From positions 62,001 through 126,000 of IMG/VR virus record IMGVR_UViG_3300028558_000791: a DNA stretch of 64,000 nt; one strand, written 5' to 3'. Of the stretch, positions 2,776-61,857 are shown one piece after another (the first letter of the stretch is position 1; each line of letters starts with the position of its first letter). A model generated the notes under the pieces. That model had not been told where the DNA came from. It saw only the letters and a program-made list of their open reading frames with translations, and did no database searches. The position numbers and the translations under genes are program-made.

Positions 2776-2937
2776 ATGGCCGAGAATGAAGACGTTGAGA
2801 GAATGAAGAAGGCATTAGAGGATATCTATAAGAATGCTGATGAAGATATGCCAAACCATAATTCAGCAAGCATTCTGATGACACTACGATGGATTAAGAA
2901 ACTTGCTAAGCGAGGTCTTGGCGAGTCTGACGATTGA
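2776..2937 (+). CDS. Hypothetical protein
   Basis: ATG one base after the previous stop; helical, charged. Confidence 0.5.
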   Translation: MAENEDVERMKKALEDIYKNADEDMPNHNSASILMTLRWIKKLAKRGLGESDD

Positions 2938-2944
2938 GGTTATT

Positions 2945-3277
2945 ATGTCTAGCGGCAAGAAAGCAATTAGAAAGTATTTCCGTGACGCATGTTACAAGCG
3001 TGACGGCTTTCGTTGCGCTATGTGTAATATGAAATCTTCCAAGGACACGGCCGAGGAAGAACTTGACGCTCATCACATAACCGATAGAAACTTACTTCCA
3101 AATGGTGGGTATGTAAAAGAGAATGGAATCTCCCTGTGTCCAACCTGCCATGAGAAGGCAGAAGTCTACCATTCGACAGGTACAGCAGTGGAGGGATTTG
3201 CCCCGGACGATCTGTACAAGAAAATCAATTCTACTTATGAAAAGGCAGTTGAAGCTAGCAATAAATTGAGTTCCTGA
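2945..3277 (+). CDS. HNH endonuclease
   Basis: CAMC...LDAHHI...NGISLCPTCH zinc/HNH pattern. Confidence 0.8.
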   Translation: MSSGKKAIRKYFRDACYKRDGFRCAMCNMKSSKDTAEEELDAHHITDRNLLPNGGYVKENGISLCPTCHEKAEVYHSTGTAVEGFAPDDLYKKINSTYEKAVEASNKLSS

Positions 3278-10854: not shown

Positions 10855-10930
10855 CGTGGTGTAGCAAATCGGCATATGCGACTGTTTCATACGCAGTATT
10901 AAGTGGGTTCGACTCCCACCTCCACGACCA
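10855..10930 (+). tRNA. tRNA-CAT (elongator Met or Ile2)
   Basis: Loop TT-CAT-AC, T-arm GTGGG-TTCGACT-CCCAC, A73-CCA; one acceptor-stem mismatch. Confidence 0.85.
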
Positions 10931-10932
10931 AA

Positions 10933-11328
10933 TCAATTCGTAGCAATTCCCGAACCTGGATCTCTACCAGTGAATGATAAGGTGGTTGTTCCTTGTGGAA
11001 CCTGAGGGAAGCTACTGATATGTTTCTCAAGATACTTCTTAATTTGTGCTGGTAACTTAGCGTAATTACCTGCAAATTGTGGAGGTTCAACTGATGGTGC
11101 TGACACGTCAACGTTCAAACCACCCAAGGTAGCCTCAGTAATGGTGACGTTGATATTTAAGTCAGCCTGATCTTTCTTGAGTTGAGATGGAAAATTCATG
11201 ATTCCATTAGCGCTGCTCTCGCCATAGCTGGCGGCATTCTGAATGATTTCTTGAAGATTCTGCGATTGAGCATACTTATTTTGAAATTTGTTTGCTAGTT
11301 TTAGAAGTAGGGCCTGAGACTTTTTCAT
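10933..11328 (-). CDS. Hypothetical protein, possibly virion-associated
   Basis: 131-aa reverse-strand ORF beginning MKKSQALLLKLANKFQNKYAQ. Confidence 0.75.
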   Translation of the reverse strand: MKKSQALLLKLANKFQNKYAQSQNLQEIIQNAASYGESSANGIMNFPSQLKKDQADLNINVTITEATLGGLNVDVSAPSVEPPQFAGNYAKLPAQIKKYLEKHISSFPQVPQGTTTLSFTGRDPGSGIATN

Positions 11329-11369
11329 ACAAGATATATGGCTTTAGTGGTATATAAGATACCGAAAAT

Positions 11370-11444
11370 GGTCGATTAACTCAGCGGTAGAGTGATGCCC
11401 TTACAAGGCGTAAGTCGGGGGTTCGAATCCCTCATCGACTACCA
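11370..11444 (+). tRNA. tRNA-Val(TAC), copy 1
   Basis: Cloverleaf, loop CT-TAC-AA, A73-CCA. Confidence 0.95.
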
Positions 11445-11517
11445 GATATGCGGGTTTTACCAAGGGCATAGCGTCCCGAGGCATCTCTTGGAAGGTGACT
11501 TAGTGTATTCCAAACAT

Positions 11518-11592
11518 TGGAGATTAGCTCAATGGTAGAGCGTCGGTTTTACACTCCGAAGACTTAGGGTTCGATCCCCTTATCTCCAACCA
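11518..11592 (+). tRNA. tRNA-Val(TAC), copy 2
   Basis: Acceptor TGGAGAT/ATCTCCA, loop TT-TAC-AC, U31-U39 mismatch, CCA. Confidence 0.88.
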
Positions 11593-11660
11593 TGTGTCCC
11601 TAACATATAGGGGATGACACCTATCACAGTGGTGTGGAATGCTGGGGAGTACAGCACCAT

Positions 11661-11734
11661 GGGCGGTTAACTCAATGGTAGAGTGCTAGCATGACTCGCT
11701 AGCTACAGGGGTTCGATTCCCTTACCGCCTACCA
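11661..11734 (+). tRNA. tRNA-Val(GAC), atypical anticodon loop
   Basis: Stem CTAGC/GCTAG, loop AT-GAC-TC (A32, U37), A73-CCA. Confidence 0.85.
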
Positions 11735-14079: not shown

Positions 14080-14154
14080 GCGAATGTAACTCAATGGTAG
14101 AGTCTCTGCCTTCCAAGCAGATGGTTGAGGGTTCGAGCCCCTTCGTTCGCTCCA
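14080..14154 (+). tRNA. tRNA-Gly(TCC), copy 1
   Basis: Cloverleaf, loop CT-TCC-AA, U73-CCA. Confidence 0.95.
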
Positions 14155-14160
14155 AGCTCT

Positions 14161-14267
14161 GGTGCCTATAGAAACCTATTCGCCCCTAATTCGAGTCCAA
14201 AGGGCTGTGACATGGCCAGCCACGAATTAGGATAAGCAGTAAAGTCAATCTGTAGGAAATAAACACC
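14161..14267 (+). ncRNA. Candidate structured ncRNA A (long irregular hairpin with central bubble)
   Basis: Nested helices GGTG/CACC, CCTATAG/CTGTAGG, CCTAATTCG/CGAATTAGG, GGCTG/CAGCC; lies between two tRNAs with no ORF. Confidence 0.5.
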
Positions 14268-14276
14268 ACGCTATAA

Positions 14277-14351
14277 GCAGACTTAATTCAGTGGTAGAAT
14301 GATTCGTTGCCAACGAATATGTCACGGGTTCGAGCCCCGTAGTCTGCTCCA
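14277..14351 (+). tRNA. tRNA-Gly(GCC), copy 1
   Basis: Cloverleaf, loop TT-GCC-AA, U73-CCA. Confidence 0.95.
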
Positions 14352-14473
14352 AGACGAATGCCAGGTAGGATTACATGGATAAAGCGTCAGGAGTAATCCT
14401 GATTCGAGATGGTTCAAACCCATCAAACTTTCCCGTAAGGGATCGTAAAAAATCTTTCCAAATTTAGTCGTCT
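14352..14473 (+). ncRNA. Candidate structured ncRNA B (multi-branch, with T-arm mimic)
   Basis: AGACGA/TCGTCT closing stem, AGGATTAC/GTAATCCT, GATGG-TTCAAAC-CCATC, TCCC-GTAA-GGGA. Confidence 0.5.
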
Positions 14474-14477
14474 ATTT

Positions 14478-14551
14478 GCGGTTATCTTCTAATGGTAAGA
14501 ATACTGGTCGCCATCCAGAGAACGCCGGTTCGATTCCGGCTAACCGCTCCA
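14478..14551 (+). tRNA. tRNA-Gly(GCC), copy 2, C33
   Basis: Acceptor GCGGTTA/TAACCGC, loop TC-GCC-AT, U73-CCA. Confidence 0.82.
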
Positions 14552-14587
14552 CGATTCCCAATCTTTCATTTGAAAGCGTGACTTTAT

Positions 14588-14740
14588 ATGCGTTCACATC
14601 ATTATCTCTTTCTCTTTCTTCTCGTGGTAGTTGTAGGCTTCCTAACTCTTAGAGGATGTGTTCACTGTACCGGCAGAGTTCTCTCTGGCCCAACTCCTAC
14701 AAATACTATCTATGTTGTTCCAGGAGGACCAGCTAGGTAA
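14588..14740 (+). CDS. Small membrane protein (50 aa, not in the ORF track)
   Basis: MRSHHYLFLFLLVVVVGFLTLRGCVHC...; fills the gap between tRNAs. Confidence 0.45.
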   Translation: MRSHHYLFLFLLVVVVGFLTLRGCVHCTGRVLSGPTPTNTIYVVPGGPAR

Positions 14741-14760
14741 GTACAAAGCAGTTAAAATTA

Positions 14761-14844
14761 GCGGGCATCGCATAGCGGCGATTGCACTTGCCTTCCAAGC
14801 AAGACTCTGAAACAACGTGGGTTCGAGTCCCACTGCCCGCTCCA
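14761..14844 (+). tRNA. tRNA-Gly(TCC), copy 2, 13-nt variable region
   Basis: GCGGGCA/TGCCCGC, loop CT-TCC-AA, insert ACTCTGAAACAAC before the T-arm. Confidence 0.88.
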
Positions 14845-18235: not shown

Positions 18236-18309
18236 TCAGGGCTCGTCTAACGGCAGGATCGAGGACTCCGAATCCTCTGATATTGGTTCGAATCCAATGC
18301 CCTGAACCA
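18236..18309 (+). tRNA. tRNA-Arg(CCG)
   Basis: TCAGGGC/GCCCTGA, loop CT-CCG-AA, A73-CCA. Confidence 0.9.
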
Positions 18310-23773: not shown

Positions 23774-24739
23774 ATGAAAGTTCTTGTATACGGATGGTAT
23801 CATCAAGGCAACATCGGCGATGATCTATTTATGGATGCCTTCTGCTATTTGTTTCCCAATATTAGCTTTGAATTTACAGAGAAAATAACTGCTGACAAGC
23901 TCAAAGATATAGATGCCGTTTTCTTCGGAGGCGGCTCTTTTCTTTTAGATGCTCCTAACATTAGCAGTGACGCACTTCAGATTATGGCCACTAAGAAAGT
24001 GTTCTATCTAGGCGTAGGCATAGAGACTAACATCCATCCAACACATCAAGCGTTGCTATCTCATGCATCGTTGATTGCAACTCGTTCTTTAGAACAAGTA
24101 GAAAAAATAAAGTCATTCAATCATAACGTTAGATTTGTGCCTGATTTAGTGTATGCTTTGCAACCAAAAATAAAAGAAGCGACTCCGATTGATAAATCTG
24201 TGTTGGTTATGACTAACATATCGGTAGTTCCACATAATGCAGATCCACATTGGAAACATGCCGCTTGGGCATATTTCAAGTCAGAGTTCGGTCAATTTTT
24301 GGACTGGTTGGTAGATTCTGGTTACAAGCCACAATTATTTTCAATGTGTCAGGGAATTAATTTAGATGATAGTTGGGCCTCGGCTGAGCTGGTTAATTCT
24401 CTAAGTAAGAGAAGTCGCAATAGACTTATGATGGAAAAACCTACTGGTATTGAACAAGTATCAGAACTTATCTCCAGACATGAAATGCTTATTACCCAGC
24501 GATTTCATGGCATTGTTCTGGCCGAGATGACCAGGACGCCATACATAGCCATTCACCATCATGACAAGTTGAAGTTCAGTCAACCAAACGAAGGAACCTT
24601 CCTTTCCTACTATAATAGTTCCAAGTTGTCCTACATAAGTGCCTTTGAGAAAACAATAAAGATGAATTTCTCTGACACTCTGCCAATAGAATCAAATATC
24701 TTCAAGACTCTTGTTGAAGAGGTCGGGAGTCTTTTATGA
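23774..24739 (+). CDS. Polysaccharide pyruvyl transferase family protein
   Basis: GWYHQGNIGDD, FFGGGSFL, LGVGI, PDLV, RFHGIVLA. Confidence 0.85.
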   Translation: MKVLVYGWYHQGNIGDDLFMDAFCYLFPNISFEFTEKITADKLKDIDAVFFGGGSFLLDAPNISSDALQIMATKKVFYLGVGIETNIHPTHQALLSHASLIATRSLEQVEKIKSFNHNVRFVPDLVYALQPKIKEATPIDKSVLVMTNISVVPHNADPHWKHAAWAYFKSEFGQFLDWLVDSGYKPQLFSMCQGINLDDSWASAELVNSLSKRSRNRLMMEKPTGIEQVSELISRHEMLITQRFHGIVLAEMTRTPYIAIHHHDKLKFSQPNEGTFLSYYNSSKLSYISAFEKTIKMNFSDTLPIESNIFKTLVEEVGSLL

Positions 24740-24751
24740 TGGTTGGTATAA

Positions 24752-26032
24752 ATGGCACGCTATATCGGAGTGAAGAACAATCGCATCTGCGTAGTATCGG
24801 ACAATTTATTCAATAATGCCGGGCTGGATGTAATCGAAATCCCACCTGAGTTGTCCCATGTGTCTCCTGCCGATTTATTAACCACCTGCGTTGTTATCAA
24901 TGGAAAGATAAAATGCAAGTGTTCCAAGAAACCAACTAATGAAATACGATTAGCATTAGTAGGTAATTGGAAAATGAGATGTGGAATTGCCACATACTCA
25001 GAAAACCTTTGGCCAGAAGTCGCTAAACATGTTGGCGATTTTAAACTTTTCATAGAGAAGAATGATATTACAACTGGTGATGTACATCAGTTTGGAGATC
25101 AAACATTATCAGAGGACCAAGTTGTTGCCTGCTGGAAGCGTGGCGAATCTTTGCAGCCCCTGATTCAAGAACTCAAAGATTTTGATCCAGACATCATTTG
25201 GATTCAACATGAGTTTGGTTTGTGGCCTAACGCCAGTTACTGGTTGTCCATGATGAGCCAATTGGGCGACTATCGTGTCATTGTAACCATGCATTCTGTT
25301 TTCCATCACAAAGATAAAACAATTGTCGAAGCAGCTATGCCAGAAATTGTAACTCATTTGGAAGGTGGACGAGTTCTTCTCAAAGAAGAGAAGGGTCTCA
25401 GTTCTAAAGTATACGTCATCCCACACGGCTGCTACAAGTTCGACAACCAGCGTTTGTGGAATTTCTACAAGTCCGACAAAACGTTTATGCAGTTTGGCTT
25501 CGGCTTCCGCTACAAGGGCTGGGAGAATTCTATAAGAGCCACTGCGATTCTTAAAGAGAAGTATCCTGACGTTTTCTTCACCGGGCTGTTCTCCGAATCG
25601 CCATACGCCAAGCTTGACCACCAAATCTATTACAACGAACTAATGAGTTTGGTTAGTGAGTTGGGTATTCAAGAGAACGTTGCAATTATACGTGGCTATC
25701 AGTCTGATGAAGTGTTGGATAGTTTCTTGCGTACCAACCAAGCAACTATCTTCCCATACGTCTCCCATCCACAGCACGAAGTGTTCGGGGCATCTGGAGC
25801 TGCACGCATGGCAATGTCCAGAGGATTACCAGTAGTTACATCTTCCGTCAACCATTTCTCTGATTTACCAACTATGAAGGCTGATACTCCTGAAGATATT
25901 GCTGCTGCCCTAGAAATTCTTTTCACAGTACCAAGTGCTAGAGAAAAGCAATTGCAATCTCAAATGGCCTATCTCAATGAAAACACTTGGGAAAATATCG
26001 GTTTACGTTACGCCCAGATATTCGGCGAATGA
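24752..26032 (+). CDS. GT-B glycosyltransferase (GT4-like) with N-terminal extension
   Basis: CGIATYS, WIQHEFG, VTMH, VIPHG, FGFGFRYKGWE, ASGAARMAMSRGLPVVTS. Confidence 0.85.
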   Translation: MARYIGVKNNRICVVSDNLFNNAGLDVIEIPPELSHVSPADLLTTCVVINGKIKCKCSKKPTNEIRLALVGNWKMRCGIATYSENLWPEVAKHVGDFKLFIEKNDITTGDVHQFGDQTLSEDQVVACWKRGESLQPLIQELKDFDPDIIWIQHEFGLWPNASYWLSMMSQLGDYRVIVTMHSVFHHKDKTIVEAAMPEIVTHLEGGRVLLKEEKGLSSKVYVIPHGCYKFDNQRLWNFYKSDKTFMQFGFGFRYKGWENSIRATAILKEKYPDVFFTGLFSESPYAKLDHQIYYNELMSLVSELGIQENVAIIRGYQSDEVLDSFLRTNQATIFPYVSHPQHEVFGASGAARMAMSRGLPVVTSSVNHFSDLPTMKADTPEDIAAALEILFTVPSAREKQLQSQMAYLNENTWENIGLRYAQIFGE

Positions 26033-26074
26033 AATTAACGATAAAAAACGATATGATCTATGAAATTAACGATA
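26029..26074 (+). repeat. 15-bp direct repeat with 31-bp period
   Basis: ATGAAATTAACGATA at 26029-26043 and 26060-26074, with a partial AACGATA between. Confidence 0.8.
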
Positions 26075-26111
26075 TATAGGTGATTGACATCAATTAACCC
26101 GAGGAGAAAGC

Positions 26112-27077
26112 ATGTCAAACCCTAATTACACCTTAGAAATTATCAGCCACCACCCTAAATTCAATAACAAATCGTTGCGCAAATACTATGTGGATGGAAT
26201 TGAAACAGTAGGAGCTTGGGGCGATGAGCCCTTTGAGATCCGTTTCAAGAACAACACCTGGCAAAAAGTTCAGGTAAAGATCACACTCGATGGAACTGAT
26301 GTTCTAACTGGTAAGCCAGGTGACACTCAGGTCTCCAAAGACATGTGGGTCGTCAATGGTTACGGAACCCTATCACTCAAGGCTTGGCCAGAAACTAACA
26401 ATGGCGGAGCCGCTTTCGTTTTTACCGGCGCTGAAAAGAGCGTTGCAGTTCATACTCATGGAGACTTATCTAGCCGTGGTATCATCGCTGCCGCTGTCTT
26501 CACTGAAGGCCATGTAGAGCCAATTACATATGCACCAGCAGTATATCACCATCATCACTATGATAACATCAGACGTTGTAAGGGAATGGGTGGAGGATAC
26601 TACGGCGGTGGTACCATTATTGGTGGAGGAATCACTTATACTGCTGGCAACACTGGCAGCCTCGGCGGAACTCTGTCTTCCAATACAATCAGCCTAAATA
26701 ATGCTAGCGCGTCCTCAGCCTCTGCTAATTACTTTAGTGATGCAAGAGAGATTAGTGATAGTGATGGATTAAGTGAGGGAGCAGCTTCGTTTGACACTCT
26801 AGTATCAGTAGGTGCTGGAGAGCATGTTGATCAGAAGATCAGTTATGTAACCGGGCTAATCAAGCCTCTCTTTACTGAGACTGTTAGGGTCAAGTATCTA
26901 TGGTGGGATGATTTGACTGCCAAGCTACGTACTGAGACTCATGCTAGACCACAGCCTTCTGGATTTCCAGGTGACGATGAACGAAAGAACATTGACCTGA
27001 AATGTACTCCAAGAGTTGGAGGGAAGCAAGGATCATTTCGTCGAGTAGAACAACCACAAGTGTTTGATCGATTCTAA
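26112..27077 (+). CDS. Uncharacterised protein with beta-rich N-terminal domain and Gly/Ser-rich linker
   Basis: FEIRFKN...ITLDGTDVLTG...GIIAAAVFTE; low-complexity middle; GAGGAG SD. Confidence 0.8.
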   Translation: MSNPNYTLEIISHHPKFNNKSLRKYYVDGIETVGAWGDEPFEIRFKNNTWQKVQVKITLDGTDVLTGKPGDTQVSKDMWVVNGYGTLSLKAWPETNNGGAAFVFTGAEKSVAVHTHGDLSSRGIIAAAVFTEGHVEPITYAPAVYHHHHYDNIRRCKGMGGGYYGGGTIIGGGITYTAGNTGSLGGTLSSNTISLNNASASSASANYFSDAREISDSDGLSEGAASFDTLVSVGAGEHVDQKISYVTGLIKPLFTETVRVKYLWWDDLTAKLRTETHARPQPSGFPGDDERKNIDLKCTPRVGGKQGSFRRVEQPQVFDRF

Positions 27078-27125
27078 TCGACACGGAGATAGAAAGTTAT
27101 TTCTATCTCATTTTATGGGAGCGTC

Positions 27126-27153
27126 TTGACAGCGCATTCGTAGAAATTATGTT
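27126..27153 (+). promoter_or_regulatory. Sigma70-like promoter
   Basis: TTGACA-N16-TATGTT. Confidence 0.55.
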
Positions 27154-27172
27154 AGGGGCACGAGGTAGAACT

Positions 27173-27310
27173 ATGCTTTTTATGTGGTGCTTACTAATTG
27201 CTGTGAATGGTTATTTTGCATATGCTAACCGTAAAAATTGGTTTGCTATTGTAAGTATTGCCTGCTGTGTTTGGTCAATTTTTCAAGCCGTTCAGTGCCT
27301 GAAAAACTGA
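27173..27310 (+). CDS. Small two-TM membrane protein (45 aa, not in the ORF track)
   Basis: MLFMWCLLIAVNGYFAYANRKNWFAIVSIACCVWSIFQAVQCLKN; GAGG SD. Confidence 0.45.
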   Translation: MLFMWCLLIAVNGYFAYANRKNWFAIVSIACCVWSIFQAVQCLKN

Positions 27311-27335
27311 TAGGCATAACGATATATATGTTTAT

Positions 27336-27382
27336 GAACCCAGTGAGGGTTCTTGACAATTAGATACACGGAGAGTGTTATT
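27336..27382 (+). promoter_or_regulatory. Two-hairpin leader element, copy 1 (before nadM-Nudix)
   Basis: GAACCC-AGTGA-GGGTTC ... ACAC-GGAGA-GTGT, then ATG. Confidence 0.65.
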
Positions 27383-28390
27383 ATGGAACAATATCAGTAT
27401 TGCGTCGTTGTTGGGCGTTTCGAGCCATTTCATCTTGCACATCATGAGCTTATTCGAGAAGCTCTGAGTTTGGCAAAGACTGCATTAGTCATTATTGGGA
27501 GCGCCCACAAGGCCCGCACCATTCAAAATCCTTGGACCGCTGTTGAGCGAGAAGCAATGATTGTTGCCGCCCTCACAGAAGAGGAAAGGGCACGAGTCAA
27601 ATTCTTCCATGTTCGCGACTACTTCTACACCAACAACCGTTGGTTGAGTGAAGTTCAGCAGCTTATTGCTGAGGCAACTGATGGAATTGAAGATGACCAG
27701 ATTTGCAACATTGGTGAGCCTGTAAACGACTTCTACTTCCCTCAGTGGAAGTATTTCAAGATGCGCAACCTAGATAGGATGCCGCATGCAACGAAGGTTC
27801 GTGATTTGTATTTCACTCACGATGCTGCATATAAGACCCATCTGGACGCTCCAGTTGCGGAAATCTTAGAAAACTTCAAAACGACTCTTGCCTTCAAGAC
27901 TTTGAAGGATGAGTATGATCATATCCGAAACTACCGCTCTTCCTGGGATGGTGCTCCCTTTCCTCCAACTTTTGTTACGATTGACTGCATTGTTATCAAG
28001 AGTGGTCACGTATTGACGGTCCGTCGAAAAGGTAGTCCTGGTCGAGGTTTGATTGCTCTTCCTGGCGGATTCTTGAACCAAAAGGAAACAATCCTTGAAG
28101 GAGCCCTTCGAGAGTTAAAGGAAGAGACTGGTATCAAGGTTTCCAAAGAGGAGCTTGAGAAGTCTATTATTGAGCAGAAAGTGTTCGACTACCCAGAGCG
28201 CTCTCTACGAGGCCGCACAATTACACATGCCTTCCTAATCAATCTAGGTCAAGGCCCACTTCCTGTCGTCAAAGGAATGGATGATGCCGACAAGGCATGG
28301 TGGATGTCACTAAGTGATTTGGCAACTAGGGAATCGGAATTCTTCGAAGACCACTTCCACATCATCACACACTTCATCAACAAATTCTAA
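27383..28390 (+). CDS. nadM: Bifunctional NMN adenylyltransferase / ADP-ribose pyrophosphatase (NadM-Nudix, NatV-like)
   Basis: VVGRFEPFHLAH, GSAH...NPWT, Nudix box ALPGGFLNQKETILEGALRELKEETG. Confidence 0.93.
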   Translation: MEQYQYCVVVGRFEPFHLAHHELIREALSLAKTALVIIGSAHKARTIQNPWTAVEREAMIVAALTEEERARVKFFHVRDYFYTNNRWLSEVQQLIAEATDGIEDDQICNIGEPVNDFYFPQWKYFKMRNLDRMPHATKVRDLYFTHDAAYKTHLDAPVAEILENFKTTLAFKTLKDEYDHIRNYRSSWDGAPFPPTFVTIDCIVIKSGHVLTVRRKGSPGRGLIALPGGFLNQKETILEGALRELKEETGIKVSKEELEKSIIEQKVFDYPERSLRGRTITHAFLINLGQGPLPVVKGMDDADKAWWMSLSDLATRESEFFEDHFHIITHFINKF

Positions 28391-28393
28391 GAA

Positions 28394-28437
28394 AAGTTCC
28401 CAGTGAGGGGATTTCAAATTAATACGGAGAGTATATC
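28394..28437 (+). promoter_or_regulatory. Two-hairpin leader element, copy 2 (before NAMPT)
   Basis: AAGTTCCC-AGTGA-GGGGATTT ... ATAC-GGAGA-GTAT, then ATG. Confidence 0.65.
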
Positions 28438-29841
28438 ATGAATTACGAAGCAGAGAATTTTCTCATCGATACGGATAGTTACAAGGCCAGCCATTACCTT
28501 CAATATCCTGAAGGAACAACGAGTATGTTTAGCTACATCGAATCTCGTGGTGGTGATTACAAGAAGACGGTGTTCTTCGGCCTACAATACTACGTCAAGA
28601 AGTACCTTACTCACAGAGTGACTGTGGAAGAGGTTGAAGAGGCCAAGGAGTTCTTCGAAGCACACGGAGAGCCATTCAACTACGAAGGTTGGATGTATAT
28701 CGCTAAGGAACTTGGTGGTAAGTTGCCGGTTCGTATTCGAGCCGTTCCCGAGGGTAGCGTTGTTCCTACTCACAATATCTTAGTCAGTATCGAATCTACT
28801 GATCCCAAAGTCTTTTGGGTGGTATCCTGGATCGAAACAATGCTACTTAGGGTCTGGTATCCTATCAACGTTGCAACCAGGAGTCACAAAATTAGACAGA
28901 TCATCTCAGAAGCCTTGAGAATCTCGGCAGATGATCCGCAGGCAGAAATCAATTTCAAGCTGCACGATTTCGGAAGCAGAGGCGTTTCGTCTCAGGAATC
29001 GGCAATGATTGGTGGAGCCGCTCATTTGGTTAACTTCATGGGTTCCGATACTGTCGTTGGTGTGCGATGCGCCAACAAATTCTACAACTCTAAGATGGCT
29101 GGTTTCAGTATCCCTGCCATGGAGCACAGCTCAGTTACCTCTTGGGGCAGAGAGCACGAAGCTGATGCCTACCGCAACATGCTTCAGAAGACTGGAAAAC
29201 CGGGCGGATTAGTTGCTTGTGTAAGCGACTCTTACGATCTGTGGAATGCCTGTTCTAACCTGTGGGGCAAAGAACTGAAGGATGAAGTGATCAAGTCGGG
29301 AGCTACTGTAGTTATCCGTCCTGACTCTGGAGATCCTTCCAGTGTTGTCCTCCGCACTGCACAATTGCTTGAAGAAAAGTTTGGAGTTACTGTCAATAGC
29401 AAAGGCTTCAAGGTTCTCAACAATGTACGCATTATCCAGGGAGACGGTATCAATGAAGACTCAATTCAAGAGATCCTTAACAATTTGCTGGATCATACTT
29501 ACAGCGCCAGCAATATTGCTTTTGGTATGGGCGGCGCTCTGCTACAGCAACATAATCGCGATACACTGAAGTTCGCCATGAAGTGTAGCCACATCTATCG
29601 TACGGTAGATGGTAAGGAAGTTTCAGTGGATGTCTTCAAGGATCCTGTTACTGACCACGGTAAAGTTAGTAAGGCTGGCCGTTTGGATTTGATTCGTGAC
29701 ATGTCTGGCAATTGGTCCACTGTCACTCTTGGAGACAAAGATCATCACCTGTTGACGGTGATGGATCTTGTCTATGAGAATGGTGAGGTTCTCAAGGAAT
29801 ATACGTTTGACGAAATTAGAAACCGTGCGAAGGGAGTGTAA
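28438..29841 (+). CDS. nadV: Nicotinamide phosphoribosyltransferase (NAMPT)
   Basis: DTDSYKASH, LHDFGSRG, IPAMEHS, VSDSYD, IRPDSGD, IIQGDG, FGMGGALLQ. Confidence 0.95.
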   Translation: MNYEAENFLIDTDSYKASHYLQYPEGTTSMFSYIESRGGDYKKTVFFGLQYYVKKYLTHRVTVEEVEEAKEFFEAHGEPFNYEGWMYIAKELGGKLPVRIRAVPEGSVVPTHNILVSIESTDPKVFWVVSWIETMLLRVWYPINVATRSHKIRQIISEALRISADDPQAEINFKLHDFGSRGVSSQESAMIGGAAHLVNFMGSDTVVGVRCANKFYNSKMAGFSIPAMEHSSVTSWGREHEADAYRNMLQKTGKPGGLVACVSDSYDLWNACSNLWGKELKDEVIKSGATVVIRPDSGDPSSVVLRTAQLLEEKFGVTVNSKGFKVLNNVRIIQGDGINEDSIQEILNNLLDHTYSASNIAFGMGGALLQQHNRDTLKFAMKCSHIYRTVDGKEVSVDVFKDPVTDHGKVSKAGRLDLIRDMSGNWSTVTLGDKDHHLLTVMDLVYENGEVLKEYTFDEIRNRAKGV

Positions 29842-29842
29842 C

Positions 29843-30742
29843 ATGATTAAAGACTATCTAAAAACTGCAATTCATATCGAAACTTGGATCAAAAATTACG
29901 CTGCCAAAGCAGGTGTTTCTACATTAGTTCTGGGCCTTTCTGGCGGAATTGACTCTGCTGTCTGTGCCTTACTCATCAAACGAACTGGAATTCCTTTGGT
30001 GTGTGTTAACATGCCATGTCATAGTTCCTCTTCTGCTTATGACCGTGCTAAGGCATTTGCTGATGAGAATGACATTAAGCTGATGAAGGTTGATTTGTCA
30101 GCGGCCCATGCAGTCATTGCTGATCAACTAACTGTCCAGGCACCATTTGATTGGCAAAGCAAAGGTTCTGCTGGCGGACTTCGTTCTTGCCTCAGAGCAC
30201 CAACTCTATCCTATGTTGCTCATGCCACCAACGGAATCATCGTTGGTACTGGCAATCGTAGTGAAGACCGTATCACCCGTTACTTTCAGAAGTTTGGTGA
30301 TGGTTGCGTAGACTTCTCACCAATTGCTGACTTGTGGAAGTCGGAAGTGTATGCCCTGTTCAAGTTCCTTGCTGAGGAAAACAATGGTGTCATGGGTCCT
30401 GGTGCACAGGCTATCTATGATGCTAAGCCAAGTGCTGACCTTTGGGGAGCTGATTCTGGTCAAGAAGATGAGAAAGAGCTTGGCATCTCCTATGATGAGA
30501 TTGAGTGGGCTGATCGTGAAGATGTTGACTCACAAGGTGAAGGTGCTTGGGGTCAGCCTATGCCAGGAATTATCTTCCTAGATTCTCACCCCGAGGAACA
30601 TGAACGTTGGGGCTCCTATACTCCACGTCAGCAAGAAGTCATTAAGACCCTTCATCGTATGGAGAAGACCTCTCGTCATAAGGCTAATCCAGCTATGCCA
30701 GTCTGTAATGTGCATGACCCTAAACTTGAACTTTGCGAGTAA
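29843..30742 (+). CDS. nadE: NH3-dependent NAD synthetase
   Basis: LVLGLSGGIDSAV, GTGNRSE, YFQKFGDG, PIADLWKSEV, PSADLW. Confidence 0.9.
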   Translation: MIKDYLKTAIHIETWIKNYAAKAGVSTLVLGLSGGIDSAVCALLIKRTGIPLVCVNMPCHSSSSAYDRAKAFADENDIKLMKVDLSAAHAVIADQLTVQAPFDWQSKGSAGGLRSCLRAPTLSYVAHATNGIIVGTGNRSEDRITRYFQKFGDGCVDFSPIADLWKSEVYALFKFLAEENNGVMGPGAQAIYDAKPSADLWGADSGQEDEKELGISYDEIEWADREDVDSQGEGAWGQPMPGIIFLDSHPEEHERWGSYTPRQQEVIKTLHRMEKTSRHKANPAMPVCNVHDPKLELCE

Positions 30743-30745
30743 ACC

Positions 30746-31021
30746 ATGAAAGTTCTTAAAAGACCCAATACCGAATGGTCGATGAAACATACCTGTACTC
30801 ATTGTACTGCCGAATTGGAAGTGGAGAAAAGTGATGTGAAATTCACTAGTCATCCCGGCGACTTCCGAGATCCGGGATATGAAACCTGGTCAGCCACTTG
30901 TCCGGTTTGCTCCAATACTTTCAATATCAAGGAATCGACGCTTCCAAAGATTGTTCAAATTGAAATCAAAAAGCGCCAACCTGATAATGGGCCGTATGGT
31001 GGTGGATATTACGATCGCTAA
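30746..31021 (+). CDS. Zn-ribbon protein, paralog 1
   Basis: MKVL...CTHC...GDFRDPGY...CPVC...LPKIVQ. Confidence 0.75.
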   Translation: MKVLKRPNTEWSMKHTCTHCTAELEVEKSDVKFTSHPGDFRDPGYETWSATCPVCSNTFNIKESTLPKIVQIEIKKRQPDNGPYGGGYYDR

Positions 31022-32540: not shown

Positions 32541-32813
32541 ATGATAAGTATTGACGAAGAGATTCAAAGAATAATTCACTTCTTGAGCCAAGGAATCGAT
32601 TATACGCTCACTATAGGGATTCTTAGTATTACCCCGATCTGTTCAGATGAGGCTTGCTGGGTGGTGAGTTGGCAAGAACAGATTGATGATACTATTCTAG
32701 AATGCCAGAAGGATTTTATATCCTTGTTCGATGCTGCACAGTATTTTGTCGAGAAAAGACGCTATATGTGCATTGGATCTGATTTTGATACATTGGAGAA
32801 TGATAATGAGTAG
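32541..32813 (+). CDS. Hypothetical protein
   Basis: 90-aa ORF. Confidence 0.65.
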   Translation: MISIDEEIQRIIHFLSQGIDYTLTIGILSITPICSDEACWVVSWQEQIDDTILECQKDFISLFDAAQYFVEKRRYMCIGSDFDTLENDNE

Positions 32814-33723
32814 CGTATTACTTGGTACTGCAATTGGTGATGCCTTGGGTGTTCCATTTGAAACTAAACTTGCTAACTATGAGTTGTTGGTTGCTTGGGA
32901 TGGTGAAACCTATTTAGGTAGCGAGCATCACGGCCTCAAACCTGGACAATACTCTGATGATACTCAGATGAGTCTGATGGTTGCCGAATCTCTTATCGAG
33001 AACCATGGATTCAATCCCGATGACTTAGCCGAACGCTATGTTGAATGGATTACATCTGGCAGGGCTAGAGGTTATGGTAAAACAACCCTATTAGCCATTC
33101 AAAATTTGGTCAATGGTAAACACTGGAGCGAATCTGGTATTGCTGGTTCCTATGGAAATGGAACCGCTATGCGAGCTGCTCCATTTGGAGTTTACTTCCG
33201 CAATGATTTACAGTCCCTAATCAGTATTTGTAAGATGGATAGTTCTATCACCCACGCTTCTGATGAGGCTGAAGCCGGTTCTATTGCTATTGGGTATGCA
33301 GCAGCCTATGCGGTCAATGGCGAGAAGGAAGGGTTACTAGATGAATTGTGGCGAATTCTGCCGGACAGCAAGGTAAAAAGTATCATTTACAGCCTTGACT
33401 CCTTGATTGATTCGCCTTACATTACACCGGAACAAGCGCTCCGTGTGATTGGAACTAAGGCAGATGTTCGACAGACTGCTCCAGCCGCATTGTATTGTTT
33501 CCTAAAGTTTGAGACCTATGCAGAGGCAATACAAGCCGCCATTAGAGCTGGTGGAGATACAGATACCACGGCTGCCATTGTAGGAGCTTTGTTTGCTGCC
33601 AGAGATGGTACGTTGAATATCTCTGATGCTTGGATTAGTGGTGTAGAGGAATCTAGTAGGCTCATGGAGCTAGATAGTCAACTTTACAACCGATCAAACG
33701 ATTCGTTTCTGAAAAGAGGATAA
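32806..33723 (+). CDS. ADP-ribosylglycohydrolase (ARH3/DraG family), copy 2
   Basis: GTAIGDALG, YSDDTQM, GNGTAMRAAP, GGDTDTTAAIVGAL. Confidence 0.92.
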   Translation: MSSVLLGTAIGDALGVPFETKLANYELLVAWDGETYLGSEHHGLKPGQYSDDTQMSLMVAESLIENHGFNPDDLAERYVEWITSGRARGYGKTTLLAIQNLVNGKHWSESGIAGSYGNGTAMRAAPFGVYFRNDLQSLISICKMDSSITHASDEAEAGSIAIGYAAAYAVNGEKEGLLDELWRILPDSKVKSIIYSLDSLIDSPYITPEQALRVIGTKADVRQTAPAALYCFLKFETYAEAIQAAIRAGGDTDTTAAIVGALFAARDGTLNISDAWISGVEESSRLMELDSQLYNRSNDSFLKRG

Positions 33724-59135: not shown

Positions 59136-59221
59136 GCCGATGTGGCGGAATGGCAGACGCGGAAGTTTCAAAAACTTCTGTCCGCAAGGACGTGTGGGTT
59201 CGAGTCCCTCCTTCGGCACCA
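59136..59221 (+). tRNA. tRNA-Leu(CAA)
   Basis: Long variable arm, loop TT-CAA-AA, A73-CCA. Confidence 0.95.
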
Positions 59222-59251
59222 GCATTTTCAATTCAACCTTTCAAGTAAGTC

Positions 59252-59713
59252 ATGAATATTAAGAATCTGTTGACCTTAACGGTTCGTACTGTAGACTTTA
59301 ACTTAGTTGCTAAGCAACCAGAACTTCTGGTTCAGCTAAGAAAATTGACGCTCTCTCCATATTCCGGCTTGAACTATGAACTCAATCGGATGCTGGAAGA
59401 TGTAAAGACACGAGAAGTCAGATGTCAAGTGCTTTTGGCCTATCGTTTTCGTAAACTAGTAGGCTGGGCCATCTTATCGAAAGAAACTACCCAATACAAT
59501 TTTTCTCGGTCTTTTGATGGTTTCAAGGCTGAGAATGGTATGATGTTTCAAGTTTTCGTGGATCCGACTTATCGAAGGCAAGGAATTGCTTCTGAAATAT
59601 ATAAGAAGGCTCAACATCTGGCAAATAATGAACTTCTTCATGTTTGTCCATGGGATGAAAGAAGTACAAATTTCTACGCCCGACATACGACAACAGCTAC
59701 TAAATGGCTGTGA
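59252..59713 (+). CDS. GNAT acetyltransferase
   Basis: VFVDPTYRRQGIASEIY acetyl-CoA loop; STNFY. Confidence 0.8.
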   Translation: MNIKNLLTLTVRTVDFNLVAKQPELLVQLRKLTLSPYSGLNYELNRMLEDVKTREVRCQVLLAYRFRKLVGWAILSKETTQYNFSRSFDGFKAENGMMFQVFVDPTYRRQGIASEIYKKAQHLANNELLHVCPWDERSTNFYARHTTTATKWL

Positions 59714-59746
59714 AATCTAGCAATAAGGCGATATATAAAACACAAC

Positions 59747-59830
59747 GCTACCATGGTGGAATGGCAGACACAGCAGTCTTAGAAGCTGCCGCCGCAAGGC
59801 GTGGGGGTTCGAGTCCCTCTGGTAGCACCA
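59747..59830 (+). tRNA. tRNA-Leu(TAG)
   Basis: Long variable arm, loop CT-TAG-AA, A73-CCA. Confidence 0.95.
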
Positions 59831-59831
59831 A

Positions 59832-60047
59832 ATGGAACATGATTGGCAAGTTGAACTAGTTGAATACTATGATATGGATTCAGACTGGGTATGTCAAAAA
59901 TGTCAAGTTAGAATGCACAGAGAGTTTCCTCGTAAAGAGGGTGGCGGTTACAGAGACACCAGAGAAACTTTAACTGAATTCAAAATTAGACTTGAATCTC
60001 CATGGGAAGCTTGGAGAAAGATTCCTAAAGAATGTTCCAGTAAGTAA
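59832..60047 (+). CDS. Hypothetical protein
   Basis: 71-aa ORF between tRNAs, CQKC. Confidence 0.55.
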   Translation: MEHDWQVELVEYYDMDSDWVCQKCQVRMHREFPRKEGGGYRDTRETLTEFKIRLESPWEAWRKIPKECSSK

Positions 60048-60049
60048 AT

Positions 60050-60126
60050 GCTCAGGTGACGGAATTGGCATACGTACGAGTCTCAGAAACTCGGTTTTGA
60101 GGGTTCGACCCCCTTCTTGAGCACCA
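60050..60126 (+). tRNA. tRNA-Leu(CAG) lacking the long variable arm
   Basis: Leu-type D-loop, loop CT-CAG-AA, 5-nt variable loop GTTTT, A73-CCA. Confidence 0.88.
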
Positions 60127-60130
60127 AATT

Positions 60131-60217
60131 GTCATCGTGGTGGAATGGTATACACACTAGTCTGAGAAGCTAGGGCTCGTAAGGGCCGTGAGGGTTCGAG
60201 TCCCTCCGATGACACCA
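60131..60217 (+). tRNA. tRNA-Leu(GAG)
   Basis: Long variable arm, loop CT-GAG-AA, A73-CCA. Confidence 0.95.
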
Positions 60218-60229
60218 ATTGAGAGGGAA

Positions 60230-61006
60230 TCAACCACCCCAAGTTTTTGGAGCTTCATAAGGGTTAGGTGGCAACTGCTCTGATTCTTTTTCTCTTGTTA
60301 CTTGATAAACGTTAGCATTATCATCATAAGGAATGGCTTGTTTGGCTTTGTATTGAGGTTCTCTTTTGAGATTTTCAAAAGCAAGTTCATTGCTAACGCC
60401 AGGCTGCCTAATACTTTTCTTGTAAATGTCAAGCGCCGCTTGAGTTTGTCTTCCTAACTTACCATCAGGGTTTACTCCGAGCATAGTCTGGAAGACAGGA
60501 TCAATTTTAGGACCAGTCCAACCCTGTGGTTTGGCGGGAGTCTTTGGAGAGACCATTGTTTGAGTTGGAAGATTAATGACATTTGATTGAGGCTGGGAGT
60601 TCCAGTTAATAGGAACTGGGCCCTGTCGATTATCTGTTCCAAACATCTTTTGTTGGCCAGCTTGAACAATTTCAGAATACTGCTCTTGAGAAATCTGGTT
60701 TCCCATATAATCAGTGTGAGCTTGCTGCAAATAACCGCCAACATACTCTTTGACTTTGTCAGGAGTTAGGGTGGCAGTATTGACAGCATTAATGCTTTGA
60801 ATACGACTCTGTGTTGATACCTTAGAGCTTTCAATATCTTCTGGTCTGACTTGTCCGACAGCAAATTTGTTTAATAAAGCATCATAATACTTGGAGCCCA
60901 GCTTTTTCTTTTCTTTTTTAGCGGTCTTGACGGCCAAAGCCCTGGTGGCTAAATTCTCGTAATCAGCGGCCATCTTCATCAATTCTTTTAGGGAGTAGGA
61001 CATCAA
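60230..61006 (-). CDS. Hypothetical protein with a peptidoglycan-binding-like segment
   Basis: FQTMLGVNPDGKLGRQTQAAL resembles PG_binding_1; N-terminal LMKMAADYENLA helix. Confidence 0.75.
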   Translation of the reverse strand: MMSYSLKELMKMAADYENLATRALAVKTAKKEKKKLGSKYYDALLNKFAVGQVRPEDIESSKVSTQSRIQSINAVNTATLTPDKVKEYVGGYLQQAHTDYMGNQISQEQYSEIVQAGQQKMFGTDNRQGPVPINWNSQPQSNVINLPTQTMVSPKTPAKPQGWTGPKIDPVFQTMLGVNPDGKLGRQTQAALDIYKKSIRQPGVSNELAFENLKREPQYKAKQAIPYDDNANVYQVTREKESEQLPPNPYEAPKTWGG

Positions 61007-61069
61007 AACCTCTTTTGCGTACGATATATAAGAGTATACTAATAATTAGGCAAGATTATTACCACATAT

Positions 61070-61145
61070 GGTTTGCGTTGTCATTTGGCAATGATAGGTG
61101 TCTGTGAAACATCAAAAGCGGGTTCGATTCCCGTCGCTCACCCCA
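61070..61145 (+). tRNA. tRNA-His(GTG), copy 1 (divergent)
   Basis: Encoded G-1:C73, loop CT-GTG-AA, two acceptor-stem mismatches. Confidence 0.75.
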
Positions 61146-61157
61146 TACCATTTTTAT

Positions 61158-61232
61158 GGTGACTGTAGTTCAATGGTAGAACGCTAGCTTGTGGCGCTAG
61201 CTACGCGGGTTCGATTCCCGTCAGTCACCCCA
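61158..61232 (+). tRNA. tRNA-His(GTG), copy 2
   Basis: Encoded G-1:C73, loop TT-GTG-GC, CCA. Confidence 0.93.
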
Positions 61233-61236
61233 AAAT

Positions 61237-61311
61237 GGGCCGTTCGTCTACTGGCTAGGACACTTGGCTTTCACCCAGGAAAAACGGGATCGATACCCGT
61301 ACGGCTCACCA
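61237..61311 (+). tRNA. tRNA-Glu(TTC)
   Basis: Loop CT-TTC-AC, T-loop ATCGATA, CCA. Confidence 0.9.
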
Positions 61312-61488
61312 ATGAAAAAGATAGTTAGTTTAGCGTTTCTTTTTTTAATTGCAGCATCTTGCAATCCTAATCCTGCGAATTATCATGTACCGCAGGGCTA
61401 TCAGACCTGCCGAACAATTGCGGACTGTCCTCGTGGCACCTACTGTGGTTTTGTAGAAATTGATAGTTATGCTGTTTGCCGCAGATGA
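61312..61488 (+). CDS. Small Cys-rich lipoprotein
   Basis: Lipobox IAASC; CRTIADCPRGTYC...C module. Confidence 0.6.
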   Translation: MKKIVSLAFLFLIAASCNPNPANYHVPQGYQTCRTIADCPRGTYCGFVEIDSYAVCRR

Positions 61489-61521
61489 ATCTGGCAATAA
61501 GCTGATATAATAGATACGACT

Positions 61522-61597
61522 GGCCCATTCGTCTAATGGTTTAGGACGGCAGCCTCTCACGTTGCTAATACGGGTTCGAATCCCGTATGGGTCACCA
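61522..61597 (+). tRNA. tRNA-Glu(CTC)
   Basis: Loop CT-CTC-AC, CCA. Confidence 0.93.
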
Positions 61598-61610
61598 AGT
61601 AAGTATTCAT

Positions 61611-61687
61611 GTCTCTGTAACTCAACTGGATAGAGTGGCAGTCTTCTAAACTGCAAGTTGGGGGTTCGAGTCCCTCCAGAGATGCCA
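61611..61687 (+). tRNA. tRNA-Arg(TCT)
   Basis: Loop CT-TCT-AA, G73-CCA. Confidence 0.95.
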
Positions 61688-61700
61688 AGTAAGATAACAT

Positions 61701-61777
61701 GTGCCTGTAGCTCAGTTGGATAGAGCGTCGGTCTACGAAACCGAAGGTCGAAGGTTCGAATCCCTCCAGGCATGCCA
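61701..61777 (+). tRNA. tRNA-Arg(ACG)
   Basis: Loop CT-ACG-AA, G73-CCA. Confidence 0.95.
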
Positions 61778-61782
61778 AGTAC

Positions 61783-61857
61783 GTCTCCATAGTGAAACGG
61801 ATATCACGATTGTCTTCGAAACAATCAGTACAGGTTCGATTCCTGTTGGAGATGCCA
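61783..61857 (+). tRNA. tRNA-Arg(TCG)
   Basis: Loop CT-TCG-AA, G73-CCA. Confidence 0.93.

Follow-up and report, generated by a model that had tools for sequence, protein, structure and literature searches.

A conserved twin-hairpin RNA leader in front of the two NAD-salvage genes of a giant phage and related uncultured phages

Phages use NAMPT plus NMNAT-Nudix, the NAD+ reconstitution pathway known as NARP2, to rebuild NAD+ after bacterial defense systems have destroyed it (bioRxiv 10.1101/2024.02.11.579819), and no description of how phages control this pathway was found. The question is raised by a stretch of 64,000 nucleotides (here, the window) covering positions 62,001 to 126,000 of IMG/VR record IMGVR_UViG_3300028558_000791, in which both NAD-salvage genes are preceded by leaders of the same architecture. 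A sequence-only reading of the window had proposed that the two leaders are twin, covarying two-hairpin elements found nowhere else in the window, that they match neither NAD+ riboswitch class, and that they act as a translational operator or small ligand-responsive element coregulating NAD recycling, with a Csr-type repressor as one candidate. The observation was confirmed, and the interpretation was supported in part. The element is conserved in front of both genes in more than a hundred related uncultured phages and occurs almost nowhere else, which suggests, on sequence evidence alone, that it is very probably an undescribed gene-specific switch.

All of the features discussed here lie on the plus strand. 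In the leader of the NadM-Nudix gene, hairpin 1 is GAACCC-AGTGA-GGGTTC at 27336-27352, a 6-bp stem with the pentaloop AGUGA closed by C-G, and it is separated by a 13-nt linker (27353-27365) from hairpin 2, ACAC-GGAGA-GTGT, at 27366-27378, with the Shine-Dalgarno GGAG in its loop (27370-27373). The ATG is at 27383. In the NAMPT leader, hairpin 1 is AAGTTCCC-AGTGA-GGGGATTT at 28394-28414, an 8-bp stem with two G·U pairs that starts 4 nt after the NadM stop codon (28388-28390), and hairpin 2 is ATAC-GGAGA-GTAT at 28422-28434, with GGAG at 28426-28429 and the ATG at 28438. The second hairpin had been placed 24 to 28 nt after the first and 3 to 4 nt before the ATG. More precisely, the gap between the hairpins is 13 nt in the NadM leader and 7 nt in the NAMPT leader, 28 and 24 nt being the loop-to-loop distances, and hairpin 2 ends 4 and 3 nt before the ATG, respectively. 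RNAfold returned exactly these hairpins, with free energies of -9.1 and -7.9 kcal/mol for hairpin 1 and -3.1 and -1.7 kcal/mol for hairpin 2. The downstream genes encode a bifunctional NMN adenylyltransferase/Nudix hydrolase of 335 aa (27383-28390; Pfam PF01467 and PF00293) and a nicotinamide phosphoribosyltransferase (NAMPT, NadV) of 467 aa (28438-29841; Pfam PF18127 and PF04095). An NAD synthase (NadE) gene (29844-30742; Pfam PF02540) begins 2 nt after the NAMPT stop codon, has no leader of its own and gave no covariance model hit, and it is probably the third gene of the operon.

Within the window, the two sites stand alone to an extent far beyond chance. The sequence CCCAGTGAGGG occurs only at these two places, even with one mismatch allowed, and a pattern search for a hairpin with an NGNGA loop followed by GGAG and ATG found only the same two. 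A first covariance model (R1), run with filters off, scored them at 53.5 and 53.2 bits, with the next best site at 10.9 bits. A second model (R2), built only from leaders at most 72% similar to those of the window, scored them at 44.0 and 42.7 bits (E values of about 4e-9 and 8e-9), with the next best site at 8.9 bits. A generic ribosome binding site is also ruled out, since CGGAGAG lies within 20 nt upstream of only 2 of 67 long plus-strand ORFs and the one-mismatch ACGGAGAAT sites are mostly inside coding sequence. Motif and model searches of the window revealed no further copies that would suggest a generic promoter, terminator or repeat, including an intergenic cassette recurring before many unrelated genes. 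Hairpin 1 is not an intrinsic terminator, as it is followed by UUGACAA or CAAAUUA rather than by a run of U, and it was not listed by a terminator scan of 26000-31000.

Scans of IMG/VR and JGI metagenomes, together with the two covariance models, yielded 146 distinct copies. Conservation and covariation in homologous leaders, whose absence had been named in advance as refuting the idea, were clearly found. In 43 MAFFT-aligned leaders, 86.7% of cells were paired, compared with 66.8% in shuffles (0 of 500 shuffles reached the observed value), and the covariation score was 0.533, compared with 0.165 in shuffles and 0.04 to 0.16 in slid controls. In 63 model-aligned leaders, 96.3% of cells were paired and all 10 stem pairs showed double changes. 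G·U pairs make up 75 of 872 hairpin 1 pairs, which argues for RNA on the sense strand rather than DNA. Loop 1 is AGAGA in 85 copies, AGUGA in 28, GGAGA in 4 and GGUGA in 3 (AGAGA or AGUGA in 113 of 134 parsed copies), while loop 2 is GGAGA in 133 of 134. Both loops share one consensus, C-R-G-W-G-A-G, namely, one purine plus a GNRA-type tetraloop sequence closed by a C-G pair, which the sequence-only reading had missed. The stem of hairpin 2 is 4 bp in 107 of 134 copies, GGAG ends 6 to 9 nt before the AUG, and the linker varies in sequence and length (mostly 6 to 13 nt). The NadM-type leaders (GAACCC/GGGUUC with ACAC/GUGU) and NAMPT-type leaders (YUUCYC/GRGAAR with AUAC/GUAU) are separate, old lineages, which keep the same loops while the proteins fall to 38% to 41% identity to those of the window. 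In GC-rich relatives there are extra helices (P0 and an outer P1 with internal loops), and extra covarying helices with small conserved internal loops appear in clade B NadM leaders and GC-rich NAMPT leaders. The element is small (about 45 to 75 nt) and well defined by covariation.

The association with the two genes is almost exclusive. All 36 strict pattern matches in IMG/VR precede a NadM-Nudix or NAMPT homolog, and the 480-kb source contig holds only the two strict-pattern copies described here. In the metagenome loci, 87 of 96 pattern matches and 109 of 114 model hits precede one of the two genes, as do all of the examined model hits of 32 bits or more in the 81 IMG/VR and genome loci. 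In 596 Gb of bacterial and archaeal genomes the strict pattern is essentially absent, with six of the seven matches in bacterial genomes looking like chance. A few hairpin 1-like stems without hairpin 2 stand before unrelated or unknown small genes in relatives, but they do not form a coherent set that would extend the regulon. Six cultured phages with the closest NAMPT, namely, Mx1, RsoM2USA, RTH11, DSS3_MAL1, Synechococcus B23 and ACP17, have no such element. The leaders thus fit the general description of a structured cis-regulatory RNA, with a conserved secondary structure supported by compensatory changes at a fixed position relative to a defined gene set.

The element matches no Rfam 15 family. 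Rfam 15 scans at the gathering score, covering the window and 20 related loci, and at E values of up to 10, covering 27200-28500, 27305-27395 and positions 2905-3015 of the related locus L057, gave only tRNAs and noise, with no hit to either NAD+ riboswitch class. Literature searches found no paper on the motif strings or on a phage nadV or NAD riboswitch.

A further feature that the sequence-only reading had missed is a NadM-specific box of 17 to 18 nt, TAGGCATAACGATATATA, at 27311-27328, which ends 7 nt before hairpin 1 and is probably the operon promoter, with a -10-like TATAT element, or a DNA operator. The box is unique in the window even with three mismatches allowed. The sequence GGCATAWYGWTATAT occurs once per related locus, which is evidence against a general phage promoter, and lies just 5' of the NadM leader wherever it was inspected, with one match (L101) in an unrelated bacterial contig. 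A looser form of the box (GATATA or GTTATA within 35 nt upstream) is present in 45 of 70 NadM leaders and in 0 of 66 NAMPT leaders. RNAalifold leaves the box unpaired, which speaks against an RNA helix.

The preferred explanation, held tentatively at a probability of about 0.42, is that the element is a gene-specific cis-acting RNA operator shared by the NadM-Nudix and NAMPT mRNAs. What the analysis itself establishes is the conservation of two hairpins with covarying stems and nearly invariant loops of one consensus, the identity of the second loop with the Shine-Dalgarno sequence on a stem held at only 4 bp, and the near-exclusive occurrence in front of these two genes; binding, regulation and everything that follows are inferred from sequence, and among the sequencing runs listed there were only DNA metagenome runs and no RNA run. 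In this view, one ligand with two equivalent binding surfaces would grip both loops, lock the weak hairpin 2 shut and hide the Shine-Dalgarno sequence from the 30S subunit, so that both genes would be set by one signal. The equivalence of the two R-GNRA-type pentaloops suggests a symmetric binder, most likely a dimeric protein encoded wherever the element occurs. Since NadM-Nudix and NAMPT are the only genes known to travel with the element, feedback repression by one of these enzymes is preferred, although release by its nucleotide or PRPP-type substrates is speculation and Pfam showed only the catalytic domains, with no evident RNA-binding domain, in either enzyme. In the NAMPT copy, where hairpin 1 starts 1 to 15 nt after the upstream stop codon, ribosomes finishing the upstream gene should unfold it, which would add translational coupling. 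The E. coli thrS operator and PyrR, a phosphoribosyltransferase-fold protein, are precedents for this reading. Against it, a few hairpin 1-like stems stand before unrelated small genes in relatives, the extra helices of GC-rich relatives are richer than a minimal protein operator needs, and a cis element that follows metabolic genes without an identified trans factor is also the classic signature of a riboswitch. A dedicated RNA operator shared by both genes in more than a hundred divergent giant phages would imply that the pathway is regulated and not merely expressed, and if the binder is one of the enzymes, this would be a new case of a metabolic enzyme acting as a translational repressor.

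A riboswitch remains possible but is less likely. The two hairpins, plus P0 and the outer P1 in GC-rich relatives, would bind NAD+, NMN, ADP-ribose, nicotinamide or PRPP directly and change the access of the ribosome to the Shine-Dalgarno sequence in loop 2. This reading is favored by the exclusive association with two enzymes of one pathway without the need for a trans factor, by strongly conserved unpaired nucleotides on covarying stems, by the variable linker and by the extra helices and internal loops, and since the element is not one of the known NAD+ riboswitch classes, it would be a new class. However, all conserved unpaired bases in the copies of the window lie in two 5-nt terminal loops, which are purine only apart from the W position and cannot kiss by Watson-Crick pairing; no complementary partner or pseudoknot was seen by inspection, short of an exhaustive search; the AT-rich form has no junction, internal loop or conserved alternative pairing; and most riboswitch classes are cellular, whereas the strict pattern is essentially absent from 596 Gb of bacterial and archaeal genomes. 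If a metabolite is the binder, the element would be a third class of NAD-related riboswitch and a phage-borne sensor of host immune activity. An unlikely but more far-reaching version is that such a class, found so far only on phage contigs, reads the host NAD pool through the breakdown products ADP-ribose or nicotinamide, or through NAD+ or NMN itself, and turns on translation of the NARP2 counterdefense enzymes only when a bacterial NAD-depleting immune system fires.

A constitutive expression cassette without a sensing role is unlikely. In this case, hairpin 1 would stabilize the mRNA or mark a processing site, at or near the 5' end of the transcript in the NadM copy, hairpin 2 would simply present a strong Shine-Dalgarno sequence, and the element would be conserved because it moves with the genes. 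The promoter-like box just before the NadM hairpin 1, a sigma-70-like promoter (TTGAACA/GATACT) just upstream of the structure in clade B, the intrinsic stability of GNRA-type loops and the optimal spacing from GGAG to AUG are consistent with this reading. However, a general stabilizer or ribosome-binding design should be used by other genes of these phages, which is not the case in the window or, for the strict pattern, in the 480-kb contig. In addition, the NAMPT copy is internal to the transcript, directly after a stop codon, yet keeps the same loop, and the extra purine 5' of the GNRA sequence and the fixed 4-bp length of hairpin 2 are conserved over very deep divergence.

Binding by a host global regulator, which would tie NAD salvage to the physiological state of the host, is very unlikely. 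For CsrA/RsmA, the candidate of the sequence-only reading, hairpin 2 reads CACGGAGAG, with GGA in the loop and A-C before it, overlaps the Shine-Dalgarno sequence and has a second site 7 to 13 nt away, which would suit a dimer. However, hairpin 1, which is just as conserved, carries GGA in only 4 of 134 parsed copies and in 6 of about 140 in a per-gene tally, and the defining GGA is therefore missing from one of the two sites. For PyrR, a resemblance that the sequence-only reading had not noted, hairpin 1 shares the core CCAGAGAGG with the binding consensus ARUCCAGAGAGGYU (PMC7430163); this core is present in all AGAGA-loop copies whose stem closes with CC/GG, while the copies of the window read CCAGUGAGG. 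No Rfam PyrR hit appeared at E values of up to 10 on stretches of 91 to 111 nt, the copies of the window have no purine-rich internal bulge, and sites for global regulators would not be confined to two phage genes. The weakest alternative, a DNA operator for a dimeric transcription factor such as an NrtR-like regulator, draws on hairpin 1 being an inverted repeat next to a conserved unpaired box but is contradicted by arms that covary around an invariant loop, by G·U pairs only on the sense strand, and by an element that always has one orientation relative to the gene and includes the ribosome binding site, although the upstream box itself may still be a DNA site.

Compared with known systems, the NAD+-I (nadA motif) and NAD+-II (pnuC motif) riboswitches are also cis-acting leaders in front of NAD metabolism genes, and NAD+-II also acts on the Shine-Dalgarno sequence, but those classes are bacterial and have internal-loop or pseudoknot pockets (tandem bulged stem domains in NAD+-I and a pseudoknot enclosing the Shine-Dalgarno sequence in NAD+-II), whereas this element is found on phage contigs with its conserved bases in two terminal pentaloops. 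The guanidine-II riboswitch (mini-ykkC) likewise has two small hairpins with the same conserved loop closed by C-G, a variable linker and a second hairpin at the ribosome binding site, but its loops are ACGR tetraloops that pair with each other, in contrast to the RGWGA pentaloops here, the gene context differs, and no Rfam hit was obtained. PyrR is a phosphoribosyltransferase-fold enzyme homolog whose RNA binding is set by nucleotides and which in mycobacteria represses translation by covering the ribosome binding site, and its binding loop in pyr operon leaders shares the AGAGA loop on C-C/G-G pairs. However, the genes downstream of this element are NadM-Nudix or NAMPT in nearly all copies and not pyrimidine synthesis genes, a second hairpin is required here, and NAMPT, a type II phosphoribosyltransferase, is not homologous to the type I PyrR. 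CsrA/RsmA sites are hairpin loops presenting GGA, two of which are bound by one dimer with one overlapping the Shine-Dalgarno sequence, and hairpin 2 fits A-N-G-G-A, but hairpin 1 lacks GGA in more than 90% of copies and the element is confined to two genes rather than spread over a regulon. The Escherichia coli thrS translational operator and the phage T4 gene 43 and MS2 replicase operators have no sequence relation to the element, for which no binder has been identified, but they are hairpin operators at or next to the ribosome binding site that are bound by the encoded or a coencoded protein, and thrS uses two similar, anticodon-like hairpins for the two subunits of the ThrRS dimer. Lambda boxB, bound by the N protein, is a short phage hairpin whose pentaloop contains a GNRA-type fold read by a protein, but it has the form GNRNA on a U-A closing pair and acts in antitermination, whereas here the extra base is 5' of the GNRA sequence, the closing pair is C-G, and the second copy is the Shine-Dalgarno sequence.

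The 64-kb window is part of the 480,838-bp IMG/VR contig IMGVR_UViG_3300028558_000791, and loci L001 and L033 from that contig are 100% identical to it at the protein level. The sequencing runs listed as holding the sequence were DNA runs from rhizosphere and soil metagenomes, with no RNA run among them. Three plus-strand genes form the operon examined here, including NadM-Nudix (27383-28390; PF01467 and PF00293), NAMPT (28438-29841; PF18127 and PF04095), and the NAD synthase gene NadE. NAMPT plus NMNAT-Nudix is the phage NAD+ reconstitution pathway NARP2. The ATG of NadE at 29844 lies 2 nt after the NAMPT stop codon, and the gene has no leader of its own. Its GGAG sits inside the end of NAMPT (29839-29846), which suggests translational coupling of a third NAD gene. 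An ADP-ribosylglycohydrolase gene (32731-33723; PF03747, E value of 5e-70) lies 3 kb downstream of the operon and has no copy of the leader, while a polysaccharide pyruvyl transferase gene (PF04230) and a weak glycosyltransferase-like gene lie just upstream of the NAD region (23774-26032). In addition, 25 tRNA genes were detected as Rfam tRNA hits in the 64 kb, in several clusters (260-1880, 10855-11731, 14080-14841, 18236-18306, and 59136-61854), which is typical of very large phage genomes.

The sequence-only reading had described a pair of two-hairpin leaders in front of both NAD-salvage genes, and this observation was confirmed in the sequence. In the NadM leader, hairpin 1 is GAACCC-AGUGA-GGGUUC (27336-27352) and hairpin 2 is ACAC-GGAGA-GUGU (27366-27378), followed by the ATG at 27383. 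In the NAMPT leader, hairpin 1 is AAGUUCCC-AGUGA-GGGGAUUU (28394-28414), with two G·U pairs, and hairpin 2 is AUAC-GGAGA-GUAU (28422-28434), followed by the ATG at 28438. The NAMPT hairpin 1 starts four bases after the NadM stop codon. RNAfold returned these hairpins, with hairpin 1 being moderately stable (-9.1 and -7.9 kcal/mol) and hairpin 2 being weak (-3.1 and -1.7 kcal/mol). Nothing else like this pair exists in the window. The 11-mer CCCAGTGAGGG occurs only twice, even with one mismatch allowed, a structural regular expression found only the two sites, hairpin-1-like stems alone occur on the plus strand only here, and only 2 of 67 long ORFs have CGGAGAG upstream.

Relatives of both proteins were retrieved from IMG/VR, and most of them carry the same leader. 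In a plain MAFFT alignment of 43 distinct leaders, C-AG-GA-G of loop 1 and ACGGAGAGU are invariant or nearly so. In this alignment, 86.7% of cells are paired, against 66.8% after shuffling (0 of 500 shuffles reached the observed value), and the covariation score is 0.533 against 0.165, with slid controls giving 0.04 to 0.16. Six of seven hairpin-1 pairs and three of five hairpin-2 pairs change on both sides. A model-based alignment of 63 distinct leaders, which leans towards the model but agrees with the MAFFT result, gave 96.3% paired cells and double changes at all 10 pairs. In total, 146 distinct copies were collected, of which 134 could be parsed. Loop 1 is AGAGA (85 copies), AGUGA (28), GGAGA (4), or GGUGA (3), whereas loop 2 is GGAGA in 133 of 134 copies. 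Hairpin 2 has exactly 4 bp in 107 of 134 copies, and GGAG ends 6 to 9 nt before the AUG. G·U pairs make up 75 of 872 hairpin-1 pairs, which, together with the fixed orientation, points to RNA rather than DNA. The NadM-type leaders (GAACCC/GGGUUC with ACAC/GUGU) and the NAMPT-type leaders (YUUCYC/GRGAAR with AUAC/GUAU) are distinct lineages, which indicates that the leader was duplicated long ago and that the loops have been held constant since, while the proteins have diverged to 38% (NadM) and 41% (NAMPT) identity to those of the window.

To examine gene specificity, a strict pattern (CYCAGWGAGRG, then 12 to 24 nt, then YACGGAGAGU) was searched in three collections. All 36 matches in IMG/VR precede a NadM-Nudix or NAMPT homologue, and the 480-kb source contig holds only the two known sites. 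Of the 96 matches in 80 stretches fetched from JGI metagenomes, 53 precede NadM, 34 precede NAMPT, 2 run off the contig, and 7 have no homologue downstream; six of those seven have no real stem or lie far from an ATG. Only seven matches were found in 596 Gb of bacterial and archaeal genomes, six of which have no proper hairpin 1 and no NAD gene downstream. The seventh (locus L104, 4076-5215) is the only genuine copy found in the genome collection and lies in an 85-kb contig of a Leptospiraceae MAG (JANRLP010000130.1), where it precedes a NAMPT homologue and a weaker copy precedes NadM. This contig is probably a phage or prophage contig binned into a MAG.

Covariance model R1 detected only the two sites in the window (53.5 and 53.2 bits; next best, 10.9). 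In 636 kb of IMG/VR and genome loci, all of the examined R1 hits of 32 bits or more precede one of the two genes, and in 472 kb of metagenome loci, the 114 R1 hits comprised 59 before NadM, 50 before NAMPT, 3 cut by contig ends, and 2 unexplained. Since the sequences of the window were included in R1, a second model, R2, was built from 35 leaders at most 72% similar to them, and it still recovered both sites at 44.0 and 42.7 bits, with 8.9 bits as the next best. However, a few hairpin-1-only stems precede unknown small genes or unrelated genes in relatives (loci L006, L012, L051, L052, and L079), which shows that the hairpin-1 type can occur alone, although these stems do not form a coherent second gene set. 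In L006 (IMGVR_UViG_3300049215_000529, 580-1110), hairpin-1-like stems with loops AGUGA, GGUGA, and AGAGA stand in tandem before two unrelated genes of unknown function (665-991 and 1102-1866), and the NadM leader of the same phage has lost the ACGGAGAGU hairpin. In two other related loci (L055, 5020-5109; L080, 1650-1739), the NAMPT reading frame behind an intact leader is broken near residues 25 to 31, which is either a frameshift or an assembly error.

NadM leaders of the AT-rich clade carry an additional conserved box, TAGGCATAACGATATATA in the window (27311-27328), which ends 7 nt before hairpin 1. The box is unique in the window and occurs once per related locus, lying at the NadM leader wherever it was inspected. 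A looser form is present in 45 of 70 NadM leaders and 0 of 66 NAMPT leaders, and RNAalifold leaves the box unpaired. It looks like a -10-type promoter element that would start the transcript at the foot of hairpin 1, although its length and its restriction to this gene leave room for a DNA operator, and the two possibilities could not be resolved. Upstream of the box, a terminator-like hairpin (27086-27109) is followed by a sigma-70-like promoter (TTGACA at 27126 and TATGTT ending at 27153) and a small hydrophobic ORF (27149-27310), which ends one base before the box. In several relatives, the stop codon of the upstream ORF is the TAG of the box itself.

GC-rich relatives have a larger version of the element. 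NadM leaders of this clade (clade B) have a sigma-70-like TTGAACA ... GATACT promoter, an additional covarying 5' hairpin (P0), and an outer helix that extends hairpin 1 across a small internal loop, and GC-rich NAMPT leaders also have the outer helix. The larger version was seen in the NadM leaders of loci L044, L048, L050, L052, L056 to L062, L065, L067, L082, and L097 and in the NAMPT leaders of L012, L056, L060, L062, L065, and others. In the NAMPT leaders inspected, hairpin 1 begins 1 to 15 nt after the stop codon of the upstream gene, and a terminating ribosome should therefore melt it.

The element could not be assigned to a described RNA family. Rfam 15 gave only tRNAs at gathering score in the window and in 20 related loci and nothing relevant at E values up to 10, even on stretches of 91 to 111 nt; by model, the element is therefore not NAD+-I, NAD+-II, guanidine-II, or a PyrR site. 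It is not a terminator, because hairpin 1 has no U-tract, and it is neither a repeated intergenic cassette nor the general ribosome binding site of this phage. Six cultured phages with the closest NAMPT lack it, and no paper describing it was found in the literature that could be searched. Cis-acting translational leaders are a known general kind of element; this one is new in being absent from Rfam 15 and from that literature, and it is attached to a pathway of current interest in phage-host conflict. The analysis establishes that the element is real, statistically robust, strongly conserved, and gene specific, whereas regulation, its direction, and the binding of any protein or ligand are inferred from sequence alone. 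The interpretation in the sequence-only reading, a translational operator or small ligand-responsive element with a Csr-type repressor as one candidate, was only partly supported.

Three features of the anatomy bear on how the element may work. The second loop is the Shine-Dalgarno sequence, and its stem is kept at four pairs, which would be too weak to block the ribosome alone but enough to do so if clamped. The two loops obey one consensus, C-R-G-W-G-A-G, a purine followed by a GNRA-type sequence on a C-G pair, and two equivalent sites suggest a binder with two equivalent surfaces. In addition, the loops are purine-only apart from W and cannot pair with each other, which weakens a guanidine-II-like RNA-RNA mechanism and favors a dimeric protein. 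Since NadM-Nudix and NAMPT are the only genes known to accompany the element everywhere, autoregulation by one of them is the most economical guess.

A riboswitch is the main rival. It would explain the exclusive link to metabolic genes without any trans factor, and it fits the richer structure in GC-rich relatives. However, the conserved bases sit only in terminal loops, and apart from the copy in the Leptospiraceae MAG contig, the element is absent from the cellular genomes searched. The remaining explanations are weaker. A purely constitutive stabilizer-plus-ribosome-binding-site cassette does not explain why no other gene uses it, and CsrA fails because hairpin 1 lacks GGA in more than 90% of copies. 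A DNA operator fails because the arms covary while the spacer is fixed and because of the G·U pairs.

Among known systems, two precedents stand out for the inferred autoregulation. One is the thrS operator. The other is PyrR, which is itself a phosphoribosyltransferase-fold protein and whose binding consensus, ARUCCAGAGAGGYU, shares CCAGAGAGG with hairpin 1 (PMC7430163), a resemblance rather than a membership.
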